Source: Antechinus flavipes
Taxonomy: Eukaryota
DNA length: 64,000 nt
Reading direction: 5' to 3'
NCBI RefSeq assembly: GCF_016432865.1
Contig: NC_067399.1
Span: forward strand, 49,290,001-49,354,000
Shown: positions 27,401 to 59,132 of the stretch, in pieces
How the letters are laid out: the number at the start of each line of letters is the position of its first letter
How positions within the stretch are numbered: the stretch's first letter is position 1
Notes under the pieces: generated by a model
Database searches by the model: none
Told to the model about the DNA's origin: nothing
What the model saw: the letters and a program-made list of their open reading frames with translations, nothing else
Program-made: the position numbers and the translations under genes

Positions 27401-30400
27401 TTTTCTGATAAGATGTTTATTCTTCCTTGGTTTTAAATGAAACCTTTGGGGGGACAGGGAACCAATTTCCCTAATTAGACTATCTAAAAGATTTTTTTTT
27501 TAATTTTCTTTTTTTAAACCATTTTAAGAATCAGTGCTATTCACTAAGCTGCTAGCTTTATACCTCTTTGTGGGGGAAGAGGGGAGGGGAACCAATTCCC
27601 CTAATGAGGCTATTAAAATTTTTTTTAAACATTTTTTTATTAAAGCTTTTTATTTGCAAAACATATGCATGGATAATTTTTCAAAACTGACCCTTGAAAA
27701 ACTTTCTGTTCCTAATTTTTCTCTCCTTCCCCCTACTCTCCCCTAGATGGCATGTAGTCCAATACATGTTAAATATGTCAAAATATATGTTAAATCCAAT
27801 ATTGTATACATATTTATAGTTATCTTACTGTATAAGAAAAATCATATCTAGAAAGAAAAAGAACCTGAGAAGGAAAACAAAATGCAAGCAAATATCAACA
27901 AAAAGCGTGAAAATATTATGTTGTAGTCCACACTCAGTTCCCACAGTCCTCTCCCTGGGTGTAGATGGCTTTCTTCATCACTGAACAATTGGAACTGGTT
28001 TGAATCCTCTCATTGTTGAAGAGCGTCACGTCCATCAGAATTGATCATCGTATAATCTTATTGTTGCCATGTATAATGATCTCCTGGTTCTGCTCATTTC
28101 ACTGAGCATCCTTTCATGTAAGTGTCCCCAGGCTTCTTTGAAATCATCCTGCTAATAGTTTCTTACAGAACAATAATATTCCATAATTTACCCAGCCATT
28201 CTCCAATTGATGGGCATCTACTCAGTTTCCAGTTTCTAGCCACTACAAGAAGGGCTGCTATAACCATTTTTGCTTATATGGGTCCCTTTCCCTCTTTTAA
28301 GATTTCTTTGGGATATAAACCCAGTAGAAACACTACTGGGTCAAAGGGTATGCACAGTTTGATAATTTTTTGAGCAGTAGTCATCAAAACCATTCGATAC
28401 TGGCTAAGAAACAATATAGTTGATCAGTGGAATAGGTTAGGTTCACAGGACAATGACTATAGTAATCTAGTGTTTGACAAACCCAAAGACCCCAGCTTTT
28501 GGAATAAGAACTTGCTATTTGACAAAAACTAGTGAGAAAATTAGAAACTAGTATGACAGAAACTAGGCATTGACCCACACATATTACCATATCCCAAGAT
28601 AAAAGTCAAAATGGGTTCATGATTTAACCATAAAGAATGAGGTTATAAACAAATTAGAAGAACATAGGATAGTTTATCTCTTAGATCTGTGGAAGAGGAA
28701 GGAATTTGTTGTGACAGAAGAAGAACTGGCGATCATTATTGATCACAAAATAGATAATTTTTTATTATATTAAGTTAAAAAGGTTTTGTGCAAACAAAAT
28801 TAATGCAGACAAGATTAGTAGGGAAGCAGTAAACTGGGAAAAATTTTTACATTCAAAGGTTCTGATAATGCCCTCATTTCTAAAATATATAGAGCATTAC
28901 CTCAAATCTATAGGAATTCAAACCATTCTCCAAATTGATAAATGGTCAAAATGGTTAAAAATTTTCAGATGAAGAAATTGAAACTATTTCTAGTCATATA
29001 AAAAGGTGCTCCAAATCACTATTAATCAGAGAAATGCAAATTAAGACAACTCTGAGATACCACTACACACCTCTCAGATTGGCTAAGATGACAGGAAAAG
29101 ATAATGACAAATGTTGGAGGGGATATGGGAAAGCTGGGATACTCTTGCACTGTTGGTGGAATTGTGAGCAGATTCAACCATTCTGGAGAGCAATTTGGAA
29201 CTAAATTTTCTTTTTTTTTTTTAAACCACTTTAAGTATCAGTGCTGTTCCCTAACATGGTAGCTTTATAGCTTTACACCTTACTAGTTGCTTTCCTCAAT
29301 ATTCATTACCTGGTTACCTAATGAACTTTGCTTATAAAGACTAAAATTCAAATAAGGATCTAGAAGCTTTGTTTTTTCCAAAAAACAAAGATTTTTTTGT
29401 TTTGTTTTTCCATTTTCCTTCTCACAGCTAACAAAGGGCATCTTTTGTCTTGTGTTCCTCTTATTTATTTAGAAGATTTTCCAACTTAATTTCTAGTACT
29501 AATTGTAATTCATTCTGGGGACAGGGATTTGATTCTTACTGTTTTGTAAGCATCATTAGGAACCTGTCTCATTTTGGGCATAGGGGTGTTCCCCTGGCAT
29601 TTCAGGTCTTTAGATGGTTCTTTGTTTATCCTCTCATCTCATCTTTCATCACAGGCTTGGGGATCATCTTTGTGTGTCCCCTTAGTATGAACCATCCAAC
29701 TTGATTTTTCTTGGATCTGACAAGAAATTCCCAACCCTCATTCCCACCCATGCACACCTGAGACTAATATGAAGGATGATCCCACAGTCCTTTGGTGGGC
29801 AGGGATGAGGTACATATAACCCCTACACTCGCTCATCCACAAAAGTGGATAAGAAGTGTTTTAGGAACCTCCATCCCATGAGTCACCCAGAATCTCCAAG
29901 ACCCCTGGGATGAAGAAATAGACCTTCCCCATGACATTATTCCTTCAAGCCCAGTCCAAGCCTCATCTCTTTTCCACCAGGATTGTCTATCAAGCCCGAG
30001 AAACGGCCCTCAGAAGGAGTATGGAGCTCTGTGGAAATATGCCTCCCTCTGCCCTGGGCATTGCCTCCAAGCTCTTCCCCCAGGAGTCAGGGCTCCGAGG
30101 GTCGGCTTCCTACCCTTACCGTACCGCAGTCCAAGAGCTGGGGCTGATGGTTCTGGAGAGCTGTCCTCAGAAGAAGCTGGAGTGCATTGGTAATAGGAGG
30201 GGCGGTCGGGAACTGGAGTGGGAGGCCCAGGGGTCGGCCTGCTCACCAGAGCCTCCTCTTCACCCCGCAGTTCGAGCTCTTCGCACAATCTGTGAGTGCG
30301 CCGAGGAATACTGCGGGGCCAGGGAGTCGCGCCTGCAGCCCAGCACCATGGCCATGTGAGTATCACGCCGTGCGGCCTAAGACCCTGCTCTCTGCGGCCT

Positions 30401-33400
30401 TCCCGCTGGTGTGCCAGGCTGGGAGCAGGACCGTGCCCCGAGAATCGCGGGCTCAGTCCCGCCCTGGGCAGCAGCTCCGGGAGCCGGGGCTCACTTCTGA
30501 AAGGCACAAGCCGCGGGGAGGAGTCTGCTGCAGAAGCCACACTTGGGGCCTGGCTGCTACAGAGACGTCTTCAGAACCCAGGCGGTCACCCCGAAAAGTT
30601 GGTGTGGGTGCAGCTTCTGCACCTGCCGCAGGGGAATGGCCCCGTGGGTGTTGGGCTGGGTTTCTCCTGTGAAAGCATTCTGGGACCGCTGCTTTCCGCG
30701 TTTCAGTGCTGCACCTCCGTCCTGTCTGGAGGAGAGCCTGGGTTCCTTTATTCTCCCTACTCCTCATCCCACCATCTGACCCCAACAGCTGGGAGCTACC
30801 CAGCCGCCCTTCACTATTTTTTGCCCTGTGTTTATTACATCCACTTTCTCTCTTGCCGGTCACTCTCCACATTGGGATCTTAGTCTTCCAGACCTGAAGT
30901 AGCCTTCTCCTGAGCTAGGCCCAGAGGGAAAGGGCCTGAGGTCAAGAACAGGATGACCCAGTTCTGGGGAGGAAATCTGCTCCAAGCTGGGGATTAGGCA
31001 GGTCCAGCCACGTGTAGCAATAGCAGCCATAGTCAGTGGATAACAATGGATAACCAGGGGCTCCAAGAGTCATGGAGTCCCACTTATGACTGCAAGTGTG
31101 CTCCATTCAGGAGTCCCTGATTCAAATCCTGCTTGAGACGTATGCAGAGACTTTTCACAGGCTAGTTTCTGAACATGTCTGTACTTTAGTCATTTATAAA
31201 AGGGAGAGGGTTCAGTGAAGAGCAAATGCGATACAGTGTGTAAAGGCATTTTGAGACCTTAAGAAGCTATATAAATGTGATCCCTTGCTATTAATGCCTT
31301 GGGCCAACTTAGGAGAAGATATACACCGTATACAGTTCAGTCCTTCTATGCTCAGGAGGTCTGGACTGCCGCTGCTTTCCCCCATCCTTAGGGTTGGATG
31401 TGGTGTGAGTGGGGCTTGTGTTAGTTATGATCTCTCTGCTGATGGGTCTCAGATCTCTGTCTGCAGCCCTCACCTCTCCTGAGCTGTGTGTCACTAACTG
31501 CCTCTGGGACATCTCAAACTTTTAGCCCATCTAAAACACAACTCCTTACTTTTCCCCCCAAACCCTCCTCTCTTTGCCTGTTATTGTCAAAGGCGCCCAC
31601 CCTCCCGGGCACCCTGTCTCTGTGGCAGCCTCAGTTCCTCACTGGAACTTGTACATATATAACTTGTGACCAAGCTTTCTTGGATCTGCCCCCACCCTAG
31701 CGCAGGCCCTTAAAGCCCCAGCCACTCTCCACACCAGTCCTTGCTTCCCTCGGCCACTTTGCTAAAACGAATCTGCCCGCGTCACCCCCACCCCAGCCAC
31801 CAAGCTCCAGAAGCAGATATAAACTGCCGTCACACTCGCCTCCCCCCATGTTTCTCTGAAATCATCCCCTCATTCTCTCCCGGGTACAGCTGCACTCCCT
31901 CACATTCACACTCCGTCCCTGGTTCCAACGTTGCCAGACTGGGCACCCCTGGGGCTCTGCCTCTGCGACATCTCGAAAGGAGCCACTGGCCGTAGTTTGG
32001 TCACATAGGCCCTTTCTCCTTCCTTGGACTTTTTTTGAGGAATAGTCCAAGTAGTGGAATGGACCAAAGGGTATGTACAAGTGAGTAACTGGGGGCACAG
32101 CTGCACCCTGCCTCCCAGAATGGTTCTTTTCCAGCCTTCTTAAATATTCTCCCCTCTACACAGTCCCACAGTCCAGTTCTGCTGACCTTCTTGTTCCTTT
32201 TTCTGACTGCTCCCCTCCCTCCTGGCTGTGATCTGGGCTTGGGATGCTCTCCCTCCTTACTTCCATTTCCCAGTTTCCCTGGATCCTTTTAAGACTGCTC
32301 AAATTACACTCCATCACCACCTTTTTTTTTTTTTTTAAACAAGGCAATTAGGGTTAAGTGACTTGTTCAGGATCACACAGCTAATAAGTGCTAAGTGTCT
32401 GAGGCCAGATTTAACTACAGGGCCCCACACTCTCCCCACTGCACCACCCAGCCACCCCAAACCTCTCCTTGAAGAGCTTTTCCAGGTCTCTCCTCACTAT
32501 ACTGTCTTTTCTCAGAGATTGCCTTCCATTTCCACTGCATACATCTTCTTTGTGCAATATTTTGTAGATTGTCTCCCCCATTAGAATGTAAAGTCCTTGA
32601 GGGCAAGGGCCATACTTCTACCTCTATATCCCCAGAACTTGTTCTGGCACTTAGTAAAGTAGATACTTGGCTCTTTTCAGCAATTGAGTGACCCGAGCCA
32701 ATTCGGATCAACTTGGGATGGAAAATACCATCTGCATCAAAGAAACCAAATTCTTGTTTTCTACTGCAAAAGAGACTCATAAAGAGGAGACAGGAAAGGG
32801 GGGAGGGATGGCAGTAAGCAAGAGGCAAAACTATTGACTGACAACTCTGTGTTGGGCACTTGGCCAAGGGCTGGGTAAGTGAAGGCAAAAAAAATCCTTT
32901 CCCTCAAGCAGCGCACATTCTATTGGGAGATATACACACAAGAGTAAATATAATTATATATGTGTGTGTGTGTCATATATAATTATATGTACACATACAG
33001 TAACTGTATATATGTTACATAGAAACACACATACACAAAAAATACATAAGTATAATTTTGGTTGGGAGAATACTGTTTGCAGAATATCAGAAAAAGCTTC
33101 ATGTGAAAGGTGATGCTTGACCTGAGCTGTGAAAAAACTGGGGCTTCCAAGAGCTGGAGTTGAAAAGAGTCATTCCAGGCCCTGGGCACAGCCTGTTCAA
33201 AGGAGTGGGTGATGAGAGCGTCACATTGGAGAACAAGAAAGCTTTCTGGGGGAACATAGAAAGCAAAGAACACATAGATCAGGAGAAAGTGAAGGGGTTG
33301 GTCATCTGTAGAATGAAGTGCAGAATGATGGGTTCAAGAGAACTTGTGGAGGGGTTGGTAAACTAGAAAACAGCTGGGTGGAGATCCTCCCCTAGTAGGG

Positions 33401-36400
33401 CCTGGGTACTGCCCCCTCCTCTCTACACCAGAGCTGAATTCACCTGGAAATCTTGCAAATGGACAGACTCAGGGGCCAGTTGTGACTGGCTACAAGTTAA
33501 GCACACAATCCAGTGGGAAAAAGGGAGGTGCTAGAGAGGCTTCCTTTAAGGTCGATTCTGCTTGTGCTAAGGGTCATGCTAGTCCAGAGGGCACTTGGGC
33601 ATCTGCCAAGTTTTCCCTCCTGTGTGCAGCGGGTCCACCTTAGCCACAGAGGAGGGAGGCATCCGCTTCTATTTTTCTTTCCATTAATGTGCCATCTTGC
33701 AGGGATCTCAGTTTCAGAGCACCCTAAATTTTGCATTTTAATTGATTTATTGATAGAACCTAATAAATGTCAACACAACCAACTTGTTTTGTAACCATTT
33801 CTATTTAAATGAAGTTTAATGCATGAAGTTTCATCTTCACAACCTTTATCCTTTTCATTCACTTTTCCTTTTATGTATTCAGGTTGGTGTGGACTTTATT
33901 CTGTACTGATTGCAATTCCTAAAGATATCCCCTTGTTTATATTCCTCATATGTGTTATATGCTAATATTCTATTGTGGATATGCCACAGTTTGTATAAAC
34001 ATTTCCTATTTTGGGATATGTATTCTCACTTTTTTGCAATTACAAATAAGGCTAATAGGAAAACTTTTAACAAATTCCTTCTTTTTTTGTTTTTTATAAC
34101 ATCTTTAGAGTATATGCCCAATAATGGGATTATTGGGTCAAAGAACATGATTGTTATTGTACTTGTACAAAGAGAGATTATTCTACAAAAGGATTCAATT
34201 ATCTTTCCACAAAAAAAAAAAAATATTGTTTCTCTTTGGACCAATCTGATGGGTAGGAGGTGGTACCTTAAAGTTGTCTAGCTTGCTTATCTATAGGTAT
34301 TAGTGAAGAACATTTTTCCAAGTAGTAATTAACTATTTCTATTACCTCTTTTGAAAAACTAGTCATATCCTTTGGGTGTTTATCCATTGTGGCTCATTAG
34401 TTACCTTTGTTATATTTTACCTGTTCCTTATGCATTTTAAATGTTTTTTTTTCTATTATATATATCACAAATATTTTCCCCAAATGTTCTACTTTTATTA
34501 CATACTTTTTTATTTTATGCAAATGCCATCTATTTTTCATTAATAAGTTTAATATTTTTATCTTTTTAATTTTAAAAGAAACCTGCTTCCCTCTCTAATT
34601 CAAGTACATAATTATTCCATGTAGAAAACAAAAATATAATTCATTAATTTTAATATTTGAAATAAGCATGAAAGAATGATAGATTTATTTCCGTCTAGAT
34701 GACATGAAGAACAACCAGAAGAAAATATTAAGAGATAAATCAAATTTATTACCTAGGCTACACTGTAAAGTGATCTCATATGTAGCTACCATATGTGCTT
34801 TTCCTTTACTGGATTTCTGCTAGTCTATTCCCACTAAGCTACTGTTTGGTGAGGAGAGCATTGCACTCTTCCCTCTTTGATTTCCTAAGCTTTGGTTCCT
34901 TTATTTGACTGGAGTTCCTGAGTGGTTATCCTTAGACCAGAGTCCACTAACTGATGTAAGACAGATGGGTTCATTGAGCCTCAGATACTCACTTGCTGAG
35001 TAACTGGGCAAGTCACTTAATCTCCACCCGTCTCAGTTAAATTGTAATATAATAATAGCGCCTACCTCCTAGAGTAATTGTGAGGCCCAAATGAGAGAAT
35101 GTATGTGAAGAGCTAGCAGTGTCTGACACACAATAGCTGCTTAGTTAATCATTTTTCGGTTTCTCTGCAGTGGTGCTGATGATCTGTTACCCATCCTGTC
35201 TTATGTGGTGTTGAAGAGTAACCTCCCCCAGCTGGTGTCTGAGTGTGCAGCCCTGGAGGAATTCATCCACGAGGGGTAGGGGTGAGATCAATGCTGAAAG
35301 GGCCGGGGAGGCTGGAAAAGATAAGGGGGGCTCCTGTGCGTCTTCCAGGAAGGGCTTGCTCTTCTTTGAATTGAAATTTGAGTGCTGGAAGGAGATTTGG
35401 AGAAAGGGCTAAAATTGGTCCCCAGAGGTCCGGGAAATCTTGGCTGGGTCACTGATCGGGCCAGTCAGTATCCTGGGTCGTGATTCAGAAATACTCTATT
35501 GCAGTCATTGCACATGGAATGGGTGCTTTCCTTACCATGGCCCTATTTATCTTAAGATTGTTTTGTCTCTTTCTCTTTCCCACACATACCCTACTGACTT
35601 TGACCTGGAGCCTCTCCTTAAAACCTCTCCTCTTTCTAGGAAGTTAATAAGAGTGTGTGACTCCTTAGGCCTTTTTTTTTTTAAGCTGAAGTCATTAGAA
35701 GACAAACAGAAAAGAAAGATATAGTTATGTCATCCCCACTCTCCCTTCCATTGTGTCTTCCTTTTGCCCTCATTACCTTGGATGTGGGAAGAGGAGGCAG
35801 GAAGTCACCCCTCTCTGGGGTCAGAGCCATTTGCTCACTAGCTGACAGTTTTGCTTATGAAACTGGACATCTCGGCAGCCTCCCTGGGGTATGACTTGGG
35901 AAGCAAGCTGAACCACTGGACCTTGGAGTCATCCGAACCTTAATGTGATGGGACAGAAAGGGAGGGAGACCGAAGGTAAAGATGGGGCTTGAATGTTATG
36001 GAAAGCACTATCTCTGGGAGCGTAGGCGCCTGCCAGAGAAACCTCAGAGCTGTGACGGGCCCCCAGCATCTTTGTTTGGCCCCTGCCCTCCAGGTCACTT
36101 AGCCATTTCTTGGGGCTGTCTTCCTCAGCCTTTTGGGGTATATACAGGCAGAAAATAGCTCCTCTCATTCTCAGCAAAGCCACATTTTTATTTACAAGGG
36201 CAAAAGTTGCTAAGATCCATAACCTTTGGCCCACCAAGTGTCCTCCAGGTTGGATAAAAAATGCAGTGTCCGTTTGTAGAGTTGAGTATATCTCTAACTT
36301 CATCAGGAGCTCCCTATTCCATTGGAGCCTTTGGGTCCCCAGGGTTCAGTAAGTGCTCGGTAAATGCTTGTTGAGGTTCCTTCCGGCTCCTCGGTCTGCT

Positions 36401-36627
36401 GCGGGCAGAAGCAAATGTAGCAGCTGCATGTGCCCGACAGTGGAGGGACCTCGGCCCTGGCATGACGCAGAGACCGATGGCGCGGGGTCGTGTCCCCACC
36501 CTGACAGTGGCCTCTGTCTGACTTTTGTGCCAGGTATCTGATTGGAGAAGAAGGCTACTGTCTGACCTCCCTGCAGAGTGCCCTGAGCTATGTGGAGCTG
36601 CTGCCACGGGGGGCTTTGGTGAAATAG
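18333..36627 (+). CDS. VPS9D1: VPS9D1, VPS9 domain-containing protein 1, 15 exons, 656 aa
   Basis: Exons: 18333-18452, 20385-20460, 21212-21304, 21418-21580, 22275-22386, 22616-22678, 22905-22957, 23040-23127, 23292-23377, 25279-25772, 26494-26623, 29981-30189, 30271-30355, 35171-35275, 36534-36627. Phases are consistent, total 1971 nt. Motifs include [10 protein letters not shown], the VPS9 motif [13 protein letters not shown] and [22 protein letters not shown]. Confidence 0.97.
18462..18817 (+). repeat. Degenerate purine-rich repeat of about 60 bp (about 4 copies) at the start of VPS9D1 intron 1
   Basis: Recurring GGGGGAGGGGGAGAAGAGGGAAGCCCCT / GGAGGGGGAGCCCC blocks with extreme G/A strand skew. 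Confidence 0.8.
22679..22904 (+). other. VPS9D1: U12-type (minor spliceosome) GT-AG intron, VPS9D1 intron 6
   Basis: The 5' splice site GTATCCTTT is the exact U12 consensus. The branch site TCTCCTTGAC (22882-22891) has its A 14 nt before the 3' splice site, with no long polypyrimidine tract. Confidence 0.9.
27631..29203. mobile_element. 5'-inverted (twin-primed) LINE-1 insertion in VPS9D1 intron 11
   Basis: The L1 3' end lies on the minus strand at 27631-28376. A degraded ORF2 C-terminal segment lies on the plus strand at 28374-29203 ([21 protein letters not shown]). There is GCA microhomology at the junction and an A/T-rich TSD-like AAATTTT..TAAAC on both sides. Confidence 0.85.
32322..32458 (-). 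mobile_element. WSINE1-like SINE (antisense, internally deleted)
   Basis: T-run followed by ggcaattagggttaagtgacttg...aagtgtctgaggccagattt...ctccccactgcaccacccagcc. Confidence 0.7.
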
Positions 36628-42413: not shown

Positions 42414-42589
42414 CGGTAAGTAGGGGCGGTTCAGTACGGGCCAAGTTTCTGTAGGCTCGACTTCTTCCCTTCCCCACAATAGTCCATCGGTATTTCACTG
42501 TATTATTATATAGTGACTAATCGTGGTCCCAGACAAGCGATGGAGACCCACACTTGCCTCATTTCACTAGAGGGGTGAAGGACTAGTGC

Positions 42590-43404: not shown

Positions 43405-43915
43405 TGTTTTCCAAAATATTCCTTATTATTGTTCTATAAGAAACGACCAGCAGGATGATTTCAGAGACGCCTGATGCTGAGTGAAATGAGCAGAACCAGG
43501 AGATCATTATACACGGCAACAACAAGACTATACGATGATCAATTCTGATGGACGTGGCTCTCTTCAACAATGAGATGATTCAGAGCAGTTCTAACTGTTT
43601 GGTGATGAAGAGAGTCATCTACACCCAGAGAAAGGACTGTGGGAACAGAGTGTGGACCACAACAAAGCATTCTCACTCGTTTTATTGTTTTTGGCTTGCA
43701 TTTTGTTTTCTTTCTCTCTTTTCTTCCTTTTTGATCTGATTTTTCTTGTGCAGCATGATGATTGTGGAAATATGTATAGAAGAATTATATATGCTTAACA
43801 TAAATTGGATTACTTGCTGTCTGGTGGAGGAAATGGAGGGAAGGGAGGGAGAAAAAAATTGGAACACAAGATTTTGCAAGGGTAAATATTGAAATATTGA
43901 AAACATGTGTTTTTA
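43405..43915 (+). mobile_element. LINE-1 3' fragment
   Basis: Contains ctgagtgaaatgagcagaaccaggagatcattatacac...aattctgatggacgtggctctcttcaacaatgag, the same family as the 27.6-28.4 kb copy. Confidence 0.85.
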
Positions 43916-43919
43916 AGTA

Positions 43920-46439: not shown

Positions 46440-46445
46440 TTTATT
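46440..46445 (-). terminator. Candidate polyA signal of the SDR-like gene
   Basis: AATAAA on the minus strand about 920 nt after the stop, followed by GU/U-rich sequence. Confidence 0.5.
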
Positions 46446-47367
46446 AAAAGAGAACAAAATGATTGGGAGAAATGGGTGAGGAGATAGGTTGGTGATAGTA
46501 TCTATCCCTAGCCTGGGGAAATACATCAGAGAAGTTGTCACTGGAAATGGCCCAGCCAAGAATCAGACCAGGCCGGTTATGTATTCTAGGTCACAGAAGG
46601 CATTGAGAGGATGGAGGATGGAGGGATGGGGGATGGGAAGGTGTTTGGTTTTAGATAAGGATGCCTTTCCAGGGGCTGATGGTGGAGGAATCATTCTCTG
46701 TGTTTCTCATCTTTTCAGTTGCTTTTACCCTGAATCTCTGACCTCTGGCTCCTTGGGATAGGAATCAGGGAGAGGAGCTAATACTCAGATGGCTGCAGAT
46801 GCTACTTCTTAGGAAATGCTCTGGTATTGTGTGAGTCTGGAGTAAGTTGGGGAACAAACCCCAGGCTTGTTTCTAGGTTCCTTCCTATCCTCCTATCCCC
46901 ACCCTCCCAGAAATTCCCTGGAGTCTCCATGAGTTCCAGACCCAAATGGCTGGGGACTTGAGAGTCAGCTTCTTCCACTGTGCATTCTCTCTTACCGAGA
47001 GCCAGGCCTGAAGCACCGGAGCCTTCCTCCCACACAGCCTAGTGCAACGGGCTTCAGGAATGGTAACATCCTCCATTGCGGCAGCTCTTGCCCTTTCCTG
47101 GGGTAGCAAGGTTCTGTGCTCCTTGTGAGAGTCATTCAGTTTCTTATCCCCCTCCAGGATTAAGGGCAGGTCTCACCTGGGGCCCCACCTGGAAGGGCTT
47201 TGGGTAATATGAGGAAGTGATACAGAAAACAGGAGGTTCACGACAGGGATGACCTAGGCTAAGGAGCTTTTTCAACCCTTGCAAGCTCCATTGAGAGGAG
47301 GAATGGGTCGGGGTGCTGACAGTGGCCAGCTGGATAGGGGTGCAGGTTTCCTGGGAGAAGGGAGGGG

Positions 47368-47757
47368 TCACAGCTTCCCCTCTGAGGTCAAGACCTGAAG
47401 ATCAGTGGGGGAGTCTACACACAGCACAGTGTGCGAGACGGCAAGCTTATCCACCAGGGAGGCCACGGCCTGGCCCACCTCCAGGTGGCTGACATAGCCA
47501 GGAGCCAGCGCTTCGGGGCGTGCAACCCCCATATTGATCTTCACCTGGAGGGTGGGCAGAAAGAGACATCGTCGGCCGCTCTCTTCCCCATTTAGGACAG
47601 AGGTCGATGGAAGATGGGGGGTTGGCCCATTTAAGGTTCAACTCAAGTATATCCTCCTATAAGAAGCTCCTCTCCAGGCAGCCTCCTCCATCCCTATTCT
47701 CTTTCGACTTTTCTGCATCTATATCTATATCTATATAGATATAGATATAGATTCACA

Positions 47758-47803
<46 letters not shown>

Positions 47804-48529
47804 CCTTCTTCCCTTCCATAGAAAGGGACAGCTTTGTAGGTTCCTGGCATCTGTCACTAAGCTTTTATTAACTACTTAGTGGTTTAAACTCACATGGGAA
47901 AGAACCGTCCTCTCTGAATATCTGCAGGAACTTCTGGCCAGGTCTTCCTACCTTGATTCTTGCCCTTCCAACCTTCCCTTCAAACCGACTGTCAGACTGA
48001 CTTTTCTTGTGTATGCAATGGGTCACGTATGTTTTAAAAGATCTTATCGCCTTCTGAATAAAGATCAAAATGTTTTTGCCTGATCTTACAAGCCTCTGCA
48101 ATTCCAGGCTTATTCAATATTATTTCTTTATGTGTCTGCTCCATACAGACTAGACAACATATCAATATATTCTGTCAGTTAACAAGCAACTATTAAATAT
48201 CTACTCTGGACAGGCCCTGCGTTCCATGCTATCCTCTATGTTTACACCTTCCCTTCTTCAAATGCTAAATGGAGATGTAGGTCACTTAATCCTGCTTGCC
48301 TCAGTTTCCTCATCAGGAAAATGAGTCGGAGAAGGGAATGGCAAACCACGCCAGTATCTCTGCCAAGAAAACCCCAAATGGGATTAGAGAGTCTGACATG
48401 ACTACAGTGACTAAACATTAATACACTAGAATAAAGCCATCGAGCCATTCGCCCCAAGGTAGGAAATGTGGAGAGCACAGGCAATAATATTGTCATATCA
48501 TCTGTACTTCCTGGTGTTCTTGGATGAAT

Positions 48530-48569
<40 letters not shown>

Positions 48570-51500
48570 CCTCCATAACACATGTACTGCTGATTGCCCC
48601 AGGCACAAAAATCACTCATAGCTCTGCAAATTCATCCTGATTTTACAAAATCCAACCCAAATGCCACTTTCTCTATGAAGTATTCCCTGATCCCTCAGTC
48701 AGGAAAGACCCTTTCCTCCTTACATCTTACATAACAGCTCACAGATATTGTTTGTATTACAGCCAGCTGCATCCCTCTTCTAGACCCCAAAATCAGGGGA
48801 GCAGGGGCTGTGTCTTACCTAAAATCTTGCTGTCTCTTCCAGAGCTAGCCCAGGGGGGCTGACATGAATACTGATATTTTTTGGTTAGTCAGACTTGTAG
48901 TGTTCCTCCTCCCTGCCCTCTACCTCAGATGCCTGAGACACACCCTCATCCATAGACATTTCCCCTAAGGCTCCTTACCTCATTCAGCTTACAGGGTACA
49001 TCAGGGTATTCCTCACGCACCACCTTGCTGAAGGATAGAGCCCCTGAGGCCCCCAGGGTCAGGAAGCCTGTGCCCGGCCTGAGCAAATGATCTCCTGCCC
49101 CACCTAGAAGACAGTAGAAAGGTGGGATAGAAACTGGGCAAATGTTCTCCTGTCCCCCTAGAAGAGAGTGGAAGGGTGGGATAGGAGCTGGGCAAATGAT
49201 CTCCTGTCCCCCTAGAAGAGAATGGAAGGATGGGATAGGAGCTGGGCAAATGTTCTCCTGTCCCCCCCCAAAGAGAGTGGAAGGGTGGGATAGAAGCTGG
49301 GCAAATGTTCTCCTGTCCCCCTAGAAGAGAATGGAAGGATGGGATAGAAGCTGGGCAAATGTTCTCCTGTCCCCCCCCAAAGAGAGTGGAAGGGTGGGAT
49401 AGGAGCTGTGCAAATGTTCTCCTGTCCCCCCCCCAAAGAGAGTGGAAGGGTGGGATAGGAGCTGGGCAAATGTTCTCCTGTCCCCTCCCAAAGAGAGTGG
49501 AAGGGTGGGATAGGAGCTGTGCAAATGTTCTCCTGTCCCCCCCCCCAAAGAGAGTGGAAGGGTGGGATAGGAGCTGGGCAAATGTTCTCCTGTCCCCCCC
49601 CAAAGAGAGTGGAAGGGTGGGATAGGAGCTGTGCAAATGTTCTCCTGTCCCCCCCCCCCAAAGAGAGTGGAAAGGTGGGATAGGAGCTGGGCATCCAGCT
49701 GTGAGGTGAGACAGAAGGGGATTACTCTGCCAGGGCTCCCCCAACCCCCAGGGGATCCCAGAATAGCACCGACCTGTTGGTGCTTATTGCTCAGTCCCAG
49801 GGTCAGAGCCTCACCTGTGATAAAGGTGTATGAGCCCCTCGGGTTCTCCCAGACCAGGGGAAAGAAGGCTTTCCAGGCAGTGAAGGTACTCAGGAGCAAG
49901 GTCTCCAGGACCTAAGCAGGAGGGAGCTTTTTCTTAGCTACAGTTCTCCTTGCCTTTCCCTCTCGCCCTCCCCCACTGCTATCCTCTTCCCTTCTTCCTC
50001 CCTCGCCCCACAGCCCCTCCGTACCCACTGTAGCTCCTTCAGGCTCTGAGTGTGGGGCGCTCCCCCTTGCCACCAGCTGAAACCCAAAGAGGAGACCACA
50101 TCAGTGACCTTCCTGCCTCCTTCCAGCAGAGACACCTTTGCTGCTTCTGCTCCATCCTCAGTGCCTGTGGAAGGAAAGGGAGCCAAGGGGGTGGGTAAAA
50201 GACTGAAGCTCCCCCTTCCCTCTGTTCTGTCTTGGAGAAAGCTACTGAAAAGTTCTCTGAAGACAGCCACATTTCTCTAGGAGTGAGAGTGTCAGGGTAC
50301 CTAAGGAAAGGAGTATTTGTCATTCCTGGATCATCCTAGCCCCAGATGGCTCTTAGGAGCTGCCCGAAATCAGGGAGCCCCAGAACAGCCTCTTGCTGTG
50401 ACATAGTGTTTAACCTCTGCAGTCAGAGGACCAGGATTCAAATCCCATTTCCAACACTTACTATCCTTGCGATTTGGGCCAAATGTTTAAACTCTACGGG
50501 CTTCGATTTCTGCAATCTACAAATGGAAAGAGTTCTGGACCTCTCCTCAGGGGTCTGGCCACTGGATATGATTCCCTTCTGGGTACTTTATACTCTTTAC
50601 AAACTGAATGACTTTTCTCTTTCTGTCAGCCAACAGGTATTTATTAAACACTTACTGTTTGCTGGGCACTTCCCAACTTCAAATGCTATAAATGTAGCTG
50701 TAACTAAGATGGGATCATCAGGACTTTGTCCCAAAGGTAGACAATGTAGAAAACACAGAGGATAATATCATCAGTACTTCCTAGTGTCTCAGAGTATATC
50801 TATCCCCTTCTTTAGTGACTGCTCATGGCCATGCAGGTAATGTCAGAAATGGAAAATGAACTCAAGTCTTCTGATACCAAATCCAACACTCTTTCCACTG
50901 CTCTGCCTCCAGAGCAGAAGTTCTTAATTTTCAGTCTGTGAACTTTAAAAAAATTTTTAAATAATATTTTATTCTTCCCCAATTAAATATTAAAACAATC
51001 TTCCTTTTTTCACATTTAAATTTTACTTTTTTTTTTAGGTTTCAGTTTCAATTTCTATCCCTCCAACAGTTTGGCAGAAAAAAAATGACAAATGTATTTT
51101 AATAGAATTTGTTTCCTTTATAAAACTGTGTGTTTTAATTTGTGCATTTAAAAACATTATTTTGAGGAAGGGTCCAGGCTTTACCAGCCTGATTAAAAAA
51201 TCCAGCAAAAGTTAAAAGCCCTGCTTTAGGGTACTATTTCATGTCTTCTTTTCAGTATTAATGTATGAATCTCTGATTGAAGTTGCTGGATTTAATTCAG
51301 GGAGTTCAGGGACAAGTTCTCACCTTTCTTTCCCCTCAGCCTTCAGCTTTGGTTCCTGCCGGCTCCTCCCTGTTCATTTTTCCCCAGAACACATGAAGAG
51401 TTCACATTTGCCTCTTGATGCAAGACCAAGACCCAGCCCCACTGCCAGGGGCACTCCCAGAACCCCTGTCGCACCCCACCCTAGAGCGGAGCTGGTGACT

Positions 51501-53460
51501 CACCAACATCCCCGACCACAGTGAACAGGCGATTGTGGGCTTCTGCTGGTAGGAAGTTCCGAAGCTTCTCCAGGCGTGTAGCATCCCGGGAAATGACAGC
51601 CACTTGGAACCCTATGGAGGTGGAGGAAGGTCAGGAGGTAGAAATAGGAATCTACAGGATGGGATCCCAATGGCTAAAAGTGTGGCCAGGAGAATCTCTG
51701 TCAAAGCTGGTCCTGTACACGGAAGCAAATGAGTCCCAGAAATTTAGAATAAGGAGCCCCAGAAACCATCTAACCCAAGTAACAGGAGAAAGTAGAATTA
51801 GAGGAGATCAGAGTTCAAATCTCAACTGTCACTTCCTTTAATTTTAGACAAGGCTTCCCCTACTTGGGCTTTGATTTTCTCATCTCTAAAATGAGAGAGC
51901 TAATAGATGAAGATAATGGAATAATATTATTGTTCTATAAAAATTGATGAACAAGCTGATTTTAGAAAGGCCTGGAAAGATTTACACAAAGTGACACTGA
52001 GTGAAACAAGCAGAACCAGGAACACATTGTACACAATGATAGCAATTTTATGCAATGATCAACTATGAAAGACTTGCGTTCTTTTCAGTGGTTCAGTGAT
52101 CCAAAGCAATCCCAATAGACTTAGGACAGAAAATGCCATCTGCAGCCAGAAAAAGAACTATGGAGATTGAATATAAATCAATACATTTCACTTCTTTTTT
52201 TCTGTTTTTTTCCCCCTCTCCCATGGTTTTTCCTTTTTGCTTTGATTTTTCTCTCCCACCGTGATTCATAAAGCAATGTGTATTAAAAACAAATAAATTT
52301 TTAAAAAATTTAAAACAAATAAAACCAGAGAGCTGGAAGACATAAAAGTCAGAGGAGACCAGGGTTCAAATATCAGCTCTACTAGTTCCTTCAATTTCCT
52401 CATTTCTAACAGGAGAGAGCTAGAAGATTCAGAGTTGCTTCATCTTTTTTTGTTCCATGGACCCTTTTGGGGCTTAGGAAGCCCATGGAATTCGCAAAAT
52501 GATAAATATTTTAAAATTCATAATTGTTAAATTGCTGGATTTCACTTAAATATTAGTGAAAATGAAGACTTTTTTTTTTCACCCAAGTTCATGGACCCCT
52601 TGAAATGTATGCATGGATTCCAGTTAAGAATCCCTGAATTGGATTCTTTCTATTTGAATTTTCTAGGACTATAACCATTACATTTTATGGACTAACTGAT
52701 GTCCAGATTTAAATAATCTGACCCAGGGTGATCCAGAGAAGGAGTGTGGGAGATGGGGATTGGAAGGATTGGAACCCTAGGTCCAGTTCTTTCGGTCCTG
52801 GGATCTACAATCGGGATGTTCTCCCACTAGGCTCCTGGCCAATTCTCATCCCAGCTCTGCACATCCTTCTCCCCCCAAGTGAAGTGCACTGGAAAAAAAG
52901 AAAGGGCTTAAAAAAAAAAAAAAAAAAAGCAGCACTTAATCAGACTCATTGTCCAGCCGCCTCTACGGATTCCCGGGGCTCGAGTGGAATGAAAAATATG
53001 GTTTAGCTCCTTCCCAGGTGGCTGGGAGAGTATCCTTCCAGGATCTTGGGGAGCGAGACTGGACTTACATCCCCAAGGTAAAACACCGGCAAGGTGGAGT
53101 GGAAAGCACATTGGATTTGCATTTATAGTCAAAGGACCTCGGTTCAGAGCTCGACTTTGTTACTTCCTACTCGTGTGACCTCTTTGGGTCTCAGTGTCCC
53201 CTTTTGTAAAATGGCAACTTGGACTCAAGTTCCTTCTAGTTCTAAATCCTAGGACCAGACTTCCTCAATCTGGGATTTCCTAACACTCCCACCCTGTATC
53301 TAGCCTGTGGCTTCGAGCTCCCACCCACCTGGGGGCCATGGTCCCACCCATCCCACTCCCCCCGAAGTCTCTCACCCTTCTCCAGGAGCGACTTCACAAT
53401 CCCAGAGCCCACGGTCCCAGCTCCTCCCAGCACGAGGACCAGGCGCTCAGAAGGGGACAT
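47368..53460 (-). CDS. Uncharacterised Rossmann-fold / atypical SDR-like NAD(P)-binding protein, 6 exons, 243 aa
   Basis: Exons: 53460-53376, 51611-51504, 50164-50025, 49911-49815, 49103-48979, 47544-47368. All GT-AG, phases 1,1,0,1,0, 732 nt with no stop or frameshift. Protein: MSPSERLVLVLGGAGTVGSGIVKSLLEKGFQVAVISRDATRLEKLRNFLPAEAHNRLFTVVGDVGTEDGAEAAKVSLLEGGRKVTDVVSSLGFSWWQGGAPHTQSLKELQWVLETLLLSTFTAWKAFFPLVWENPRGSYTFITGGAGDHLLRPGTGFLTLGASGALSFSKVVREEYPDVPCKLNEVKINMGVARPEALAPGYVSHLEVGQAVASLVDKLAVSHTVLCVDSPTDLQVLTSEGKL*. The ATG has A at -3. Confidence 0.9.
47717..47802. repeat. Perfect 36-bp palindrome (ATCTAT)3(ATAGAT)3 next to (CA)21
   Basis: Palindrome arms at 47717-47734 and 47735-47752; CA run at 47761-47802. 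A second run, (CA)16, lies at 48535-48566. Confidence 0.95.
48280..48415 (+). mobile_element. CORE-SINE with RTE-derived tail (MAR1-like); an antisense copy lies near 54345-54540
   Basis: CORE gtcacttaa...cctcagtttcctcatc followed by ggagaagggaatggcaaaccacgccagtatctctgccaagaaaacccc. Confidence 0.7.
49083..49690. repeat. Minisatellite (VNTR), 11 x 54-58 bp
   Basis: Units start at 49083, 49138, 49192, 49246, 49301, 49355, 49410, 49466, 49521, 49578 and 49633. Consensus gcaaatgttctcctgt[C5tag|C8-11]aagagagtggaagggtgggataggagctg(g/t). Confidence 0.95.
51915..52320 (+). mobile_element. LINE-1 3' fragment in intron 1 of the SDR-like gene (antisense to it); another fragment near 53925-54250
   Basis: ctgagtgaaacaagcagaaccaggaacacattgtacac...cagaaaatgccatctgcagccagaaaaagaactatggag, ending in an A-rich tail. 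Confidence 0.8.
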
Positions 53461-53559
53461 GCTGCCCGGAGGATGCCCCGCAGACCAAGCGAAGGCTGGA
53501 CCCCGAGCGAATATTAAGTGGAGGAGGTTCCTTGGCGTCTCGCCCTCGGAGGCCGTCGC

Positions 53560-53640
53560 TGGCCAATCCCTCAGCACTCTGGAGGGATTGGCTCCGCCCC
53601 CTGGGCTGCCAGCCAAGCCCCGAATCTCGCCAGCCAATTT
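53560..53640 (-). promoter_or_regulatory. Promoter of the SDR-like gene: three CCAAT boxes and a GC box
   Basis: CCAAT 53563-53567, ATTGG 53587-53591, CTCCGCCCC (Sp1) 53592-53600 and CCAAT 53634-53638, in a CpG-containing patch 100-180 nt upstream of the ATG at 53460. Confidence 0.65.
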
Positions 53641-56064
53641 CCTAGATCTATTATGCAGTCGGTCCGGGACAAGGAACGAACTGCAAAGGAGTTTGCAAAT
53701 TATAGGCTCTAACTCTCAGCTTACGGAGAGGGCAAGAAAATTGTTCCAATCCACCCCACAACAATTATTTCCCTCTCCAACAACAGCCGGCATCTATGTA
53801 ATGCTTGGAAAAGCTTTGCAAAGCACTTTCTGTGATATTTCATTTGATTCTCACAACCACCTTGGAGGTATTTTTATTGTCTCCATTTTACAAATGAAGA
53901 AACTGAGGTTTAAAGGGACCGAATTTCAGGCCAGTTCCAATGGTCTTGTGAAGAAAGCCATCTGCACCCAGAGAAAGGATTTGGGCGCTGGGTGTGGATC
54001 ACAACACAGCATTTTCACTCTTTTTATTATTGTTTGCTTGTATTTTGTTTTCTTTCTCATTTTTTTCCCTTTTTGATCTGATTTTTCTTGTGCAACATGA
54101 TATTTGGGGAAATATGTATAGAAGAATTGCATATGTTTAACATAGATTACTTGCCATTTAGGGGAGGGGATGAGGGAAAGGAGGGAAAAATTTTGTTAGG
54201 GTGAATGTTGAAAATTATCCATGAATATATTTTGAAAATAAACTTTAAAAAAATAAGGGGGACCGAATTTGAACTCTTGCTGGCTTTCAGGTCTTTTCCA
54301 TGCACTGAGCTACCTACTTGTCTCACCAAACTTCTTCAACAAGTGGTCATCCATTAAATAATAGTTCTCGTCCAACCATCTTCAACTCCTTGTTTTCTTG
54401 GCAAAAATACTGGAGCGATTTGCCATTTTCTTGTCCAGCCCATTTGACAGATAAGAAAACTGAGGCAAACAGGGTTAAGTGACTGGCCCAGGATCAAAAA
54501 GCTTCTGTCTGAGACTGGATTTGAATTACTGACGAGCACTCTGCCCAGTGAGTCATCTAGTTGCTAATAATAATAATAGCAGTAGATACTGTGCTAAACA
54601 CTTTACAAACATTCTCTCATTTGATCCTCACATCAACCCTGGAAGGTAGGTACTCTTATTATCATGCCTGCTTTACCTTTGAGGAAACTGAGGCAGAAAG
54701 GGATTAAATGACTTGCTCAGAGCCCCCCACTTCAGACACCCAAGGCAGACTCTGAATTCAGGTCTTGCTGCCTTTGGGTAGCTCGGTGGGAAAGGGATAG
54801 AATTCGGGGCCTGGATCTGGCCTTTGGCTCTATCCACTGACCAACTTAGCTGCCTTTGTATCTTTGGGAATGAGGGGATTCACTCCACATTTGGAGGGCT
54901 CTTTCTGCCCACTAAGCCTAAAAATAACCTTTCTACAGTTTCTGCCCTGGATTTTGCTCTGCGGTGGGGTCTGGCATCAAACCCTATTGTTTTACCTCCA
55001 AACTCCAGGGCTTTCTGTGTCCCAGTGGCTTTCTTTTTTTCCCAGAGCGCACTGTAGAACAGCATCATAAAGGTGAGGTTCCTACCGGCCCCTACCACCT
55101 CCAAGCCCTGCTTAAATCTCCTTGCTCCACGGAGCCTTGGCAGTGCCCTCTGCGAGCCTGTTGGGGATCCTGGGAAAAGGCAGACTTGGGTTTGGATGCC
55201 CTGATTTGTGATATGACCTTGGGCAGATACCTCCCTCAGTCTGCGCCTTTCGGTCTCCTACGGTTCTGACCTTGGATGGTTCTGGGCCGCTGGCAGGATG
55301 GGCGGGTCCGAGAGCCGCTTTCGCCCCCCGGGGAAGCTCCGGCCTCCAGTGGCCCGGTATTGCCACCTAGCGTTCCAGGGAGGTTGAGTGCGTGCGGGGG
55401 CATCGCGGGAAGGGGGCAGTGAGATGGGGGAGAGGGGCGGCTCCCGGCTCCATCGCTGCCACAGGGAAACCGATTTCGGGTCGTTAGAACTAGGAAGAAT
55501 CCGGGGTGTTCTCCACGCCCTGGCCCACGGAAGGGCTCACGGCAAAGCCGGGCAAGGCTGGGACGAGAGCCCAGATTTCAGGTCTCAGTGTCAGTCATCT
55601 GTGCCGCGGGCGCCCTGGTGGAGGAAACTTCGCTTCCCAAAGAGCCAGGCGCCTTGGGCAGAGCGCGCGATTCTCCCGGCGCTCTCGGGCCGCTGCGGGG
55701 CCAGGCGAGTGACCCCTCCCCCCTACCTGAGTTAGGGACCACAGCACTTCCAAGTCCTGACTCACGAGCCCAGCAGCGCCGTGAGCCTGCGAGCGGGAGG
55801 GCAGGACCCTCACACCACAGAGGAGGAAACAGGACTTGGGGGCTGTCACACCGCTAGCCTGACTTTCGGACCCCAAATCTGGAGGTTGCTGACTCCTGAG
55901 GAGGTGACGAATTTAAGCGTCCCCCCACTGTCTCTTTCGCTTCCTGTTCCCAGGTGGGGACCCCCTCCCCTTTTCACCAGCGCCCTCCGCCCATCACCCT
56001 TCCATTCTCTGTAGAAACCCCTTCTCTGTAGTCTTCGGTCCGGCAAGGACAGAGTTAAACTTCA

Positions 56065-56236: not shown

Positions 56237-56468
56237 GTAAAGACGCCTCCCCGGCTTCCCGCCTCCCCTTCCCTTCCCCATCCTCACCCCGAGACTGCCA
56301 TCTGGGGGCGGGTGTGGGGGCGGCCTGAGCCCGGTTCTCCGGGGGAGCGCTTCTCTGATTTGGCTCGGCCGTCTGGGGGTGAGGGGGGCGCTGCGCTGGG
56401 GAGGGGGTCCTGGAGGAGGCGGGGGAGGGGACTTCGCACCTAACCCCCCCACCTCCCCCACCCCCAGG

Positions 56469-59132
56469 ATGGGCGCCAGCTCCCTGTCGGAGGATTACCG
56501 TCTGTGCTTGGAGCGGGAGCGGCGGAGGGGCGGCTCGGGCGTCTGTGCAGACCCCACTCTGCGGGCCGTGCTCTGGCAGATCCTCGTGGAGGACTTCGAC
56601 CTCCACGGGCTGCTCCAGGACGACGCCCTGGCCCTCTTCACCGATGGGCTGTGGGGCCGAGGGGACCTGGCCCCCGCCCTGCGCAACCTGGCCCGGGCGT
56701 TCGAGCTTCTGGAGCTAGCCGCTGTCCACCTCTACCTCTTTCCCTGGAGGAAGGAGTTCACCACCATCAAGGTAGAAGCGGCCCGGGATGTCCCCAGCTC
56801 TGCTTGGCCGAAGGGCCAGGATCTGCCGGGAGCTCCGCGGCTGGGCCCGAGCGGTGTGCCGGCCAGGGGATGGGGGCGGGGAGTGGGGAGAAGGACGACA
56901 GGCGGGGGGGGGGGGGGCGGAGGAGAAAGGGGAGGGGGCCCTGCTTGCCCTTTCTGGGGCCAGTGGTGGTCCAAGCTTCGGAACTTCTCCGCCTGGCCGC
57001 CGGAGCCCAGGAAGGGGCCCGCGCTTCCAAGCCACCTTTGCCCCGGGGACCCTCTCGGTCACCGGCAGCCTTGTTAGAGCGGGGCTAAGTAGGTACGGAG
57101 GGGAGCGCAAAGTGGGCAGGATTTGGCGTCAGGTTCACGTCCCTTTCCGTGCCTCGGTTTCCCCGTGTTGGACCCGAATGATTCCTCAATCCTGCGAGCA
57201 GATGGGTGACACCCTGAAGTCACGAAGCACGAGGGCAGACCGCGGGGTGGGCCGGTTCCTGAGCAGGTGGAGAGCCTGCACCTGCCCTCGTCTCACCCTC
57301 CTGCCTCCTGTGTATTCCGTGCCCAGAAGCGATAGGGAGCAGGGAACTGTCATGTCAATCAGAGTGCCAGCTAGAACAGCTGGAAAAAGATCGCCCCAGC
57401 AACTTTGTGAATGTTGGGGAGGGAGCCGAGTGATGTCATCTTGGGCAGCGTGGGAGAGTAACACCTCCACTCCGTTACTGTGGCAACCCCAGCCTCCCCA
57501 GGAACCCGGGCACAACTTCGGAAACCAGGTTACTCGGCAGCGCCACCTGCTGGCCCACTGAGCCTAGAGAGGGGCGCTTCAGCTTTTCGTGGGCCATGGA
57601 CCCCTTTGCAGCGTGGTGGAGCCTGGGGACCCCCTTCAGAGCAATCTTTAAAAAAAAAAATTTCCACATTTCCTAGCTGTGTGACTCTGGGCAAGTCACT
57701 TAACTCCTTTGCTCCAGAAAAAAAAATTCCAGAGCAATCTTTTTAAATAATGGGAGGAAAAGCTCTTTAAATTAGGTTAGTGAAAATAAAAATTAATTTT
57801 TTGGTACATCCAAGATCATGGATCCAATGAATTCTACTTAAGAACCCCTTAATTAAGATTCCAGATTTAGAACCTCTGACCTATAGAAGTCAGTCGGAGG
57901 ACTTGGAGTCTGAGATCGGGGTTTGAATAATACTGTAATCCCAGGGAAGGCAGCCTGACTCTGATTCCCCATCTGTAAATGAAAGTAATACTTGACTCCC
58001 AACTTCACAGCGGTCCTGAGAGGAAATCCTTTGGAACCCGATAGAAATCCCAGTTATTAACAGAGAGGGAGAAAGGGCGACAGACTGAGCACCCCTAAGT
58101 CAGTAACGTGGTTCTTTTTGGTTACAGACATTTTCGGGGGGCTATGTCCACTTCCTGAAGGGCGTGCTCTCGGAGGACCTCATCACCAAGTGCTTCCAGA
58201 AGATGGGCTACACGAGGAGGGACGAACACCACCTGGTCGTGGCCACGCCACCGCCGGGCTATGAGCTCGTTCAGGTGGCTCTCGGCTGCTTCGCTCTACG
58301 GTTGGAGTGCGAGATTCTCGGGGAGATCCTGACCAAGCTGGGGACCAGCCTCCTGTCTGCCGAGGAGCTGATCGAGGAGCGAAGGGCCAGTGGGGACGTG
58401 GACACATGCGTGGACCGGCTGAGGCGGCGGCTGGCTGGAACCGGAGAGCCGCCCACGAGGCCTTTGGTCAGTTACCCCGCCGGCATCGATCTGTACAGTG
58501 ACATGCTGGAAGAAGGGCCCGAGGATGGGTCTTTGTATGGTGAGCCCCTCACTGGGCCAGAGTCGCCCTCCCCAGAGTTAGCCTATCAACCCCCGGTCTG
58601 GGAACAGAGTGCCAAACTGTGGGGCACCGGCCAGATGGCCTCCAGCGCCCGGGAGCTTCGGGACAACGGGAGCAGCTGGGAGTCTCCGAGCGTGGAGGAG
58701 CCAGTGGAGGAGAGCCTGTCCTATGAGGCTTTTGAAGAACCCACGGAAGAGAGAACCACCTTCTCCTTCATCGCCCTGCGGAGAGAGCTGACCACAGAAG
58801 TTCCCGGGGGCAAGAGCCCCAGCCGCTCCCCTCGGCACGTCAGGGCCGCCGGGCATCTTGAGGCCGCCGAAGGGGCCCCCGCTTCTCCCTCTGCCGCGGG
58901 TGGGGAGCCCCAGCGCTACCAGCTTCACGGTTGCCTGCCAGTGGGCACTCTGCCCGCTTACTGCTGTGATACGTGCTGCCAGCTCCACGCCAGCCACTGC
59001 CAGGCCCTGTATAACTGCCGCCTGGATCACACACTGCACGAGCTGCTGAGCGAGAAGCAGCGCCGTCTCTGGCTGCAGAGGACCCAGCTGGACTCCCTGC
59101 TCTATGAGAGTCCCCCTAGAGCCAGGCCCTAG
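56469..59132 (+). CDS. SPATA2L: SPATA2L, spermatogenesis-associated 2-like (PUB domain, C-terminal Cys/His cluster), 435 aa
   Basis: Coding exons 56469-56771 (MGASSLSEDYRLCLERE...WRKEFTTIK, donor gtagaa) and 58128-59132 (TFSGGYVHFLKGVLSEDL...LLYESPPRARP*). The acceptor cccccag at 56467, just before the ATG, implies a non-coding first exon; a candidate donor ggacag|gtaaag lies at 56236/56237. Confidence 0.96.
57537..57555 (-). promoter_or_regulatory. Consensus CTCF-binding motif in SPATA2L intron 2
   Basis: The minus strand reads GGCCAGCAGGTGGCGCTGC, matching GGCCASYAGRKGGCRSY. Confidence 0.6.

Follow-up and report, generated by a model that had tools for sequence, protein, structure and literature searches.

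An intact six-exon gene of Antechinus flavipes for a predicted SDR-fold protein without the catalytic tetrad, conserved across jawed vertebrates and apparently lost in eutherians and birds

Here we describe a minus-strand gene in a 64,000-nucleotide stretch of Antechinus flavipes genomic DNA (the window; contig NC_067399.1, positions 49,290,001 to 49,354,000), which is predicted to encode a 243-residue protein with the fold of the short-chain dehydrogenases/reductases (SDRs). Its sequence and conservation indicate that it is a real, intact and functional gene. Taken as a whole, the explanation that we hold with high, though not full, confidence is that of a functional ancestral gene, deleted in eutherians and in the bird lineage, whose product would bind nicotinamide adenine dinucleotide phosphate (NADP(H)) on an SDR fold lacking the catalytic tetrad and would carry out hydride transfer. 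The gene model is not new, being already in RefSeq for about ten marsupials, and the family name is public too; the loss pattern and the missing catalytic residues are new to the literature that we searched, in which the fish orthologue, si:dkey-238o13.4, appeared only in two differential-expression tables, and the LOC-numbered identifiers, the absence from eutherians and birds and the missing tetrad were not mentioned. We regard the finding as real, well supported and only moderately surprising: an unusually conserved, uncharacterised SDR-fold variant with a clean pattern of lineage loss.

The gene was assembled from the window by script. Results showed that six exons of 85, 108, 140, 97, 125 and 177 nt (the last including the stop) join into a coding sequence of 732 nt, 243 codons plus stop, with an uninterrupted open reading frame (ORF) and intron phases of 1, 1, 0, 1 and 0. 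All five introns start with GT and end with AG behind a pyrimidine tract, their phases match, and the window sequence is without any N. The reconstructed protein is identical to RefSeq XP_051830715.1 (A. flavipes LOC127547769, ‘uncharacterized protein’) at 243/243 positions, which indicates that an independent annotation arrived at the same six exons. A first-pass annotation of the window, made from the letters alone, had proposed this same chain of exons and had described the ORF list as showing only disconnected pieces of it; both descriptions held, the gene being visible between 47 and 54 kb only as separate minus-strand fragments carrying its peptides. When single exons were scanned against Pfam, the sole match was a sub-threshold Epimerase hit on exon 1. 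The proposed CCAAT/GC-box promoter was found, with CCAAT at -131 (53591-53587) and GGGCGG at -139 (53599-53594) upstream of the ATG, along with three inverted CCAAT boxes at -107, -178 and -290. No TATA box was detected in this promoter-like region, and its GC content of 59% and observed/expected CpG ratio of 0.57 amount to weak CpG enrichment. The start context, earlier called good, is only partly so, with A at -3 but T at +4, and the nearest AATAAA is a candidate polyadenylation signal 923 nt past the stop.

The first search query was a stop-free ORF starting with exon 4, scored over its first 40 residues only, and it led to two 243-aa marsupial RefSeq proteins. When one of these was searched at full length against a collection of 5.8 billion proteins, 208 relatives were retrieved, of which the best 120 are reported here. 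Nearly all of these have 243 aa and share 61-93% identity with the query; they come from marsupials, platypus, turtles, lizards, tuatara, alligator, frogs, salamander, lungfish, bichir, bowfin, sharks, rays, chimaera and many teleosts. Many of the teleost and shark matches are named si:dkey-238o13.4 and are 61-71% identical across all 243 residues, in agreement with the first-pass annotation, which had pointed to a teleost protein of that name with near-identical motifs. A cluster look-up yielded orthologues in Sarcophilus, Antechinus, Trichosurus, Phascolarctos, Notamacropus, Vombatus, Dromiciops, Gracilinanus, Monodelphis, platypus and echidna, and the 243-aa ORF was intact in ten marsupial and two monotreme species.

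In a 50-species orthologue alignment, the mean column identity was 80% and 68 columns were invariant. The N-terminus quoted earlier and the five motifs listed with it (GGAGTVGSG, SSLGFSWWQGG, WKAFFPLV, FITGGAG and PGTGFLT) are all present in the protein and are invariant or nearly so in the 50 orthologues, and sharks and marsupials share ~70% identity over every residue; across gnathostomes, identity along the full 243 aa spans 61-97%. Takifugu, platypus, Sminthopsis and Sarcophilus, whose coding exons were recovered from each locus, share the six exon sizes of the window. The dN/dS ratio was 0.09-0.13 among three dasyurids (Nei-Gojobori; 11-22 synonymous versus 4-6 non-synonymous differences) and about 0.2, up to 0.21, against platypus and Takifugu; all values lie well below 1, which the first-pass annotation had named as support for its claim. 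The zebrafish and other fish entries si:dkey-238o13.4 are the same gene by length (243 aa), exon sizes and neighbours, as are the LOC-numbered ‘uncharacterized protein’ entries of amphibians, reptiles, monotremes and marsupials (61-100% identity); the Antechinus copy is set apart from them only by dasyurid-specific substitutions and an expanded minisatellite in intron 4. These results indicate that the Antechinus gene is the marsupial orthologue of si:dkey-238o13.4 and an ancestral jawed-vertebrate gene, present in chondrichthyans, ray-finned fishes, lungfish, amphibians, reptiles and monotremes and retained in marsupials, as had been proposed.

The chromosomal setting is conserved as well. 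In Takifugu, order and orientation are the same as in the window, with SPATA2L divergent upstream and VPS9D1 convergent downstream; the SPATA2L side, likewise divergent upstream, is the same in platypus, Sminthopsis, Gracilinanus and Sarcophilus, with CDK10 lying beyond it in Sminthopsis and Gracilinanus. The distance from VPS9D1 to SPATA2L is ~20 kb in Antechinus, where the gene itself spans ~6 kb. From the annotated end of VPS9D1 to SPATA2L we counted 3.4 kb in armadillo, 2.8 kb in elephant and ~0 kb in elephant shrew, with no gene between, and in the emu the gap is 1 kb and the two genes adjoin directly. No eutherian or bird protein was present among the best 120 of the 208 full-length matches, nor among the ten strongest partial representatives checked, and a control query with SPATA2L returned dozens of eutherians and birds. 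Of the 30 vertebrate-like fragments from a profile search of 1.84 billion representatives, none was closest to a mammal. The emu locus (21.4 kb, gap-free, from a ZNF276-like zinc-finger gene to CHMP1A) was searched by tblastn with four orthologues, and no relic of the gene was found in it (best E = 0.36); in the control, the alligator protein recovered all six exons from the platypus locus (E = 5e-8 to 1e-22). Protein sets and annotated loci thus support deletion of the gene in the eutherian stem lineage, the loss that the first-pass annotation had thought probable. Since the alligator has the gene and the emu is without it, a second, independent loss is indicated in the lineage to the emu, probably shared by all birds. 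One fragmentary representative of 169 aa (P0138) has as its closest named relative the alligator protein, with which it shares only 71% identity; it could be a diverged remnant from an archosaur, possibly a bird.

Evidence for transcription came from the koala and from fishes. A second koala copy, LOC144457191 (12597-13310 of the koala locus), is intronless, lies inside a Staufen-like gene and matches the parent protein as one unbroken 241-residue block, with 89% protein identity to the koala orthologue. Its sequence marks it as a processed retrocopy that is colinear with the product of splicing all six exons, and such an intronless copy implies that a spliced germline mRNA of the gene exists. 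In the retrocopy, Gln replaces Arg37 and three residues of the invariant GTGFLTLGA are deleted, and it is probably decaying despite its annotation as a 268-aa protein. The fish orthologue is listed in differential-expression tables from trout-liver and zebrafish-brain RNA-seq.

The protein matched Pfam adh_short with 42.8 bits (cutoff 26.6; E = 5e-11), the match ending at residue 148. An AlphaFold2 model built on the orthologue alignment (predicted local distance difference test, pLDDT, 84; predicted template-modelling score, pTM, 0.87) showed the alternating strands and helices of the classical SDR fold, and Foldseek (probability 1.00) placed it at template-modelling (TM) scores of 0.72-0.79 to CBR4, HSD17B14, PECR and archaeal and bacterial alcohol and gluconate dehydrogenases, at 17-22% identity; profile E-values to the nearest solved structures were 7e-11 to 2e-6. 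The model and the profiles indicate a single-domain Rossmann fold of the classical SDR type. Its nearest classical SDRs are human PECR (1yxm), HSD17B14 (1yde/5ics) and CBR4 (4cqm) and the Thermotoga maritima gluconate 5-dehydrogenase (1vl8), with which it shares the ~250-residue Rossmann domain, the NADP-type Ser-Arg after β2 and the Asp-Val after β3. It differs from them in having GxxGxxG instead of TGxxxGxG, in lacking the tetrad and in an identity of only 17-22%.

The N-terminal loop reads L-G-G-A-G-T-V-G-S-G, that is, GxxGxxG; the classical TGxxxGxG is not present, and the second classical Gly falls opposite Thr16 in the hidden Markov model (HMM) alignment to 1vl8. The motifs of the cofactor site (the Gly-rich loop, Ser36-Arg37 after β2 and Asp63-Val64 after β3) are invariant or nearly so in the 50 orthologues, position 63 being Asn in some fishes and opossums, and SSLG stands where classical SDRs have NNAG. 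A Ser-Arg pair after β2 marks NADP(H) preference, and these motifs suggest that the protein most likely binds NADP(H). In HMM alignments to 1vl8 and 3l77, the tetrad Asn-Ser-Tyr-Lys, whose Asn belongs to helix 4 and whose Tyr and Lys form the YxxxK of helix α5, fell on Thr115, Gly144 (next to Thr143), Leu158/Phe157 and Ala162/Gly161, residues that are themselves invariant or nearly so in the 50 orthologues. Columns 145-172 of the alignment contained no Tyr, and their only Lys were at position 149, which varies (Lys in teleosts but Arg or His elsewhere), and at the marsupial-only Lys170. As aligned, the catalytic tetrad is absent from the protein.

Cellular location was read from the two termini. 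Strand β1 starts at residue 7, which leaves no N-terminal extension or targeting peptide, and the C-terminal tripeptides of the orthologues (GKL, GKI, GKV, GNL, GSL and GWL) hold no conserved [SAC]-[KRH]-[LM]. With neither an N-terminal targeting peptide nor a conserved peroxisomal targeting signal type 1 (PTS1), the protein is probably cytosolic. A peroxisomal location, suggested by the name ‘PECR’ and the -GKL end, was rejected, since the last three residues are not conserved as PTS1. Searches of NCBIfam gave no specific family, all matches being far below the cutoffs, and AFDB cluster, Swiss-Prot and Atlas searches returned generic SDR neighbours only. Membership in PECR was likewise dismissed: the profile match to 1yxm covers residues 6-136 only (E = 1.6e-10), at 22% identity, and PTS1 is missing. 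Given the missing PTS1, the database names ‘peroxisomal trans-2-enoyl-CoA reductase’, ‘L-fucose dehydrogenase-like’ and ‘17-beta-HSD14’, all assigned automatically, are unjustified and wrong. Pfam NmrA reached 20.8 bits against a cutoff of 27, over residues 6-46 only, which left no ground for NmrA/HSCARG-like membership.

Relatives outside the vertebrates were numerous. The profile search of 1.84 billion representatives retrieved 2,305 relatives at E<=1e-3 and 35 at E<=1e-30, including proteins from a tunicate, a sponge, a streptophyte alga, eukaryotic transcriptomes and metagenomes, to which the Atlas search and a genome scan added fungi, haptophytes, actinomycetes, Spirochaetaceae and Saprospiraceae (the last two as metagenome-assembled genomes in a single-protein scan). 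In the distant relatives the SLG.WWQG motif recurs, as do Tyr139, Glu175 and a basic residue at position 125, and YxxxK and the tetrad were absent from 98 distant family members too. A design without the triad that is common to distant relatives must be old and widespread, which argues for alternative chemistry over recent decay. His120, Tyr139 and Glu175 of the non-vertebrate members may form an alternative catalytic set that vertebrates modified.

Our best guess at function, which we would put at about or just under an even chance, is a non-canonical NADPH-dependent hydride-transfer enzyme. The protein would bind NADP(H) through the retained cofactor elements, and would hand hydride straight to a planar or electrophilic substrate that is already activated, dispensing with a Tyr/Lys acid-base pair; the invariant aromatic, histidine-rich loops (GFSWWQGGPPHTQ and LLMPGTGFLT) would form the substrate pocket. 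SDR-fold reductases without the triad are established, among them biliverdin reductase B/flavin reductase, NmrA-type quinone oxidoreductases and triphenylmethane reductase, which have a GxxGxxG NADP(H) site and no YxxxK and deliver hydride directly to an activated planar substrate. The Antechinus protein resembles these enzymes in its GxxGxxG and its absent YxxxK, a likeness by analogy. Those reductases belong to the atypical, NmrA-like branch with different C-terminal halves, whereas the Antechinus protein is closest to the classical SDR fold, and no significant sequence match to the triad-less reductases was seen (the best was the Pfam NmrA score given above).

Several points weigh against the overall explanation. 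Cofactor binding and any activity are deduced from motifs alone. The least confidently modelled parts of the protein are its two most conserved loops, GFSWWQGGPPHTQ and GGAG..LLMPGTGFLT (pLDDT 52-66); low model confidence is common in loops that become ordered once a ligand binds. Position 120, Thr in vertebrates, is a near-invariant His in distant members, and the chemistry may differ within the family. The two bacterial loci examined, one with an alpha/beta hydrolase, an isochorismatase and CMD and the other with OpuAC, MFS and a ferric reductase, had no neighbours in common and gave no functional hint. Support for transcription comes from two indirect lines, the koala retrocopy and the fish expression tables, neither of them from Antechinus, and the eutherian loss is read from protein databases and the annotation of three eutherian loci. 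That indirectness would suit a marsupial copy that is an unexpressed or decaying pseudogene with a frame open by chance, as would the expansion of a minisatellite of decoy acceptor sites in intron 4; the low dN/dS among the dasyurids, the ORF intact throughout the marsupials and monotremes sampled, the uniformly canonical splice sites and the germline expression of the spliced form implied by the koala retrocopy speak against such a pseudogene, and on dN/dS and ORF integrity we rejected it as having next to no probability. Persistence of the gene in eutherians, either unannotated between VPS9D1 and SPATA2L or moved and diverged, is also very improbable. At the eutherian loci the evidence is that of annotation, which sometimes misses short or lowly expressed genes; against this, the collection searched holds hundreds of annotated eutherian proteomes and gave no eutherian among its best 120 of 208 matches, down to 61% identity, the profile search returned no vertebrate-like fragment closest to a mammal, and the annotated interval of 0-3.4 kb in three eutherians compares with a gene span of ~6 kb.

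The main rival to an enzyme is a non-catalytic pseudo-enzyme in which the redox state of bound NADP(H) controls a partner protein, which we consider possible but unlikely. NMRAL1/HSCARG, NmrA and the MAT2B regulatory subunit are SDR-type folds whose cofactor state controls a partner; NMRAL1/HSCARG and MAT2B, like the Antechinus protein, keep the cofactor site and have lost the catalytic residues, with no sequence relationship to it beyond the Rossmann motif. Replacement of the four canonical catalytic residues by residues incapable of acid-base chemistry would fit a sensor of this kind, as would the invariant cofactor motifs, the most conserved loops being modelled as flexible, the column identity of 80% over the whole surface-forming sequence, which is commoner in partner-constrained proteins than in small-molecule SDRs, and the precedents for SDR-fold regulators and NADPH sensors (MAT2B, mBFP) in the literature. 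The same triad-less architecture occurs, however, in bacteria, fungi, algae, sponge and tunicate, where a partner of the vertebrate type is unlikely; polar residues conserved across the family, among them Tyr139, Glu175 and Lys/Arg125, would be compatible with an active site of another kind; the present data suggest no partner; and the Pfam NmrA match is sub-threshold and confined to the first 40 residues. More doubtful still is the fuller proposal that the protein is an NADP(H)-state sensor or regulatory subunit and not an oxidoreductase, kept nearly unchanged for >400 million years and dispensed with independently by placentals and birds; if it were true, placental mammals and birds would have replaced or lost an ancestral vertebrate redox-signalling step. 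The present results do not separate hydride-transfer enzyme from sensor, and the remainder of the probability goes to readings other than these two.

Few vertebrate proteins without a studied function are conserved as strongly as the product of this gene, which escaped study because human, mouse and chicken appear to lack it. With the tetrad lost and the cofactor site kept, the protein would be either a redox-sensing pseudo-enzyme or an enzyme that solves catalysis on the classical SDR scaffold in a way not yet described. Because the gene is cleanly present or absent at one fixed locus, it lends itself well to the study of gene loss when placentals and birds arose, and zebrafish, medaka, Xenopus and opossum offer knockout systems. 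In genome annotation, the names PECR, L-fucose dehydrogenase-like and HSD17B14, where they have been attached to this gene, need correcting. Coordinates of the gene and its surroundings are collected in Table 1.

Table 1 Features of the gene and its neighbourhood in the window (positions counted from the first letter of the window)
Feature	Position	Strand	Remarks
Exon 1, coding part	53376..53460	-	85 nt; ATG at 53460; donor GT 53375-53374; β1 and Gly-rich loop GGAGTVGSG
Exon 2	51504..51611	-	108 nt; phase 1 in and out; β2 with ISRD (Arg37), and GDVG
Exon 3	50025..50164	-	140 nt; β4 and invariant SSLGFSWWQGG.PHTQ loop
Exon 4	49815..49911	-	97 nt; helix α4 (WKAFFPLV) and β5 (YTFIT)
Exon 5	48979..49103	-	125 nt; GGAG..PGTGFLTLGA, the expected place of the classical Ser/Tyr/Lys
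Exon 6, coding part	47368..47544	-	174 nt plus TGA stop at 47370-47368
Promoter-like region, TATA-less	53461..53760	-	inferred from sequence
Candidate polyadenylation signal AATAAA	46440..46445	-	nearest on the strand; none closer to the stop
55-bp minisatellite	49079..49693	-	11 copies, 90% matches; fills intron 4 and enters the first 25 nt of exon 5
SPATA2L	56379..59132	+	head-to-head with the gene; first coding exon ~56.4-56.8 kb, large exon 58164-59132
VPS9D1 coding exons	21208..36603	+	tail-to-tail with the gene; from tblastn of emu VPS9D1 gene-region peptides against the window
ZNF276-type zinc-finger exon	0.9-1.3 kb	-	

The neighbouring SPATA2L was recognised by a match to Pfam SPATA2_PUB-like and is 97% identical to Sarcophilus SPATA2L. 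The ~10 kb that separate the final coding exon of VPS9D1 from the stop of the gene (36600-47300) showed no long ORFs and presumably consist of 3′ untranslated regions and repeats. Two gene models from sturgeon and Brachyhypopomus (P0303 and P0296), named ‘cyclin-dependent kinase 10’, share the 90% cluster of the gene; they are probably mis-fused models joining it to the neighbouring CDK10, and as such a further hint of conserved linkage.

Repeats were found in introns 4 and 5. The minisatellite unit of intron 4 repeats the intron-4 acceptor (tcttctag) and the first ~25 nt of exon 5, and the array forms a row of decoy 3′ splice sites. Intron 4 measures 711 bp in Antechinus, 462 bp in Sarcophilus, 273 bp in Sminthopsis, 188 bp in platypus and 78 bp in Takifugu, which indicates that the array expanded within dasyurids. 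The array is open in several frames, and a coincidental 243-aa ORF at 49013-49744 (minus strand) is a translation of the repeat and not the gene. Intron 5 holds two perfect (AC)n microsatellites, at 47760-47802 (21.5 copies) and 48534-48567 (17 copies).

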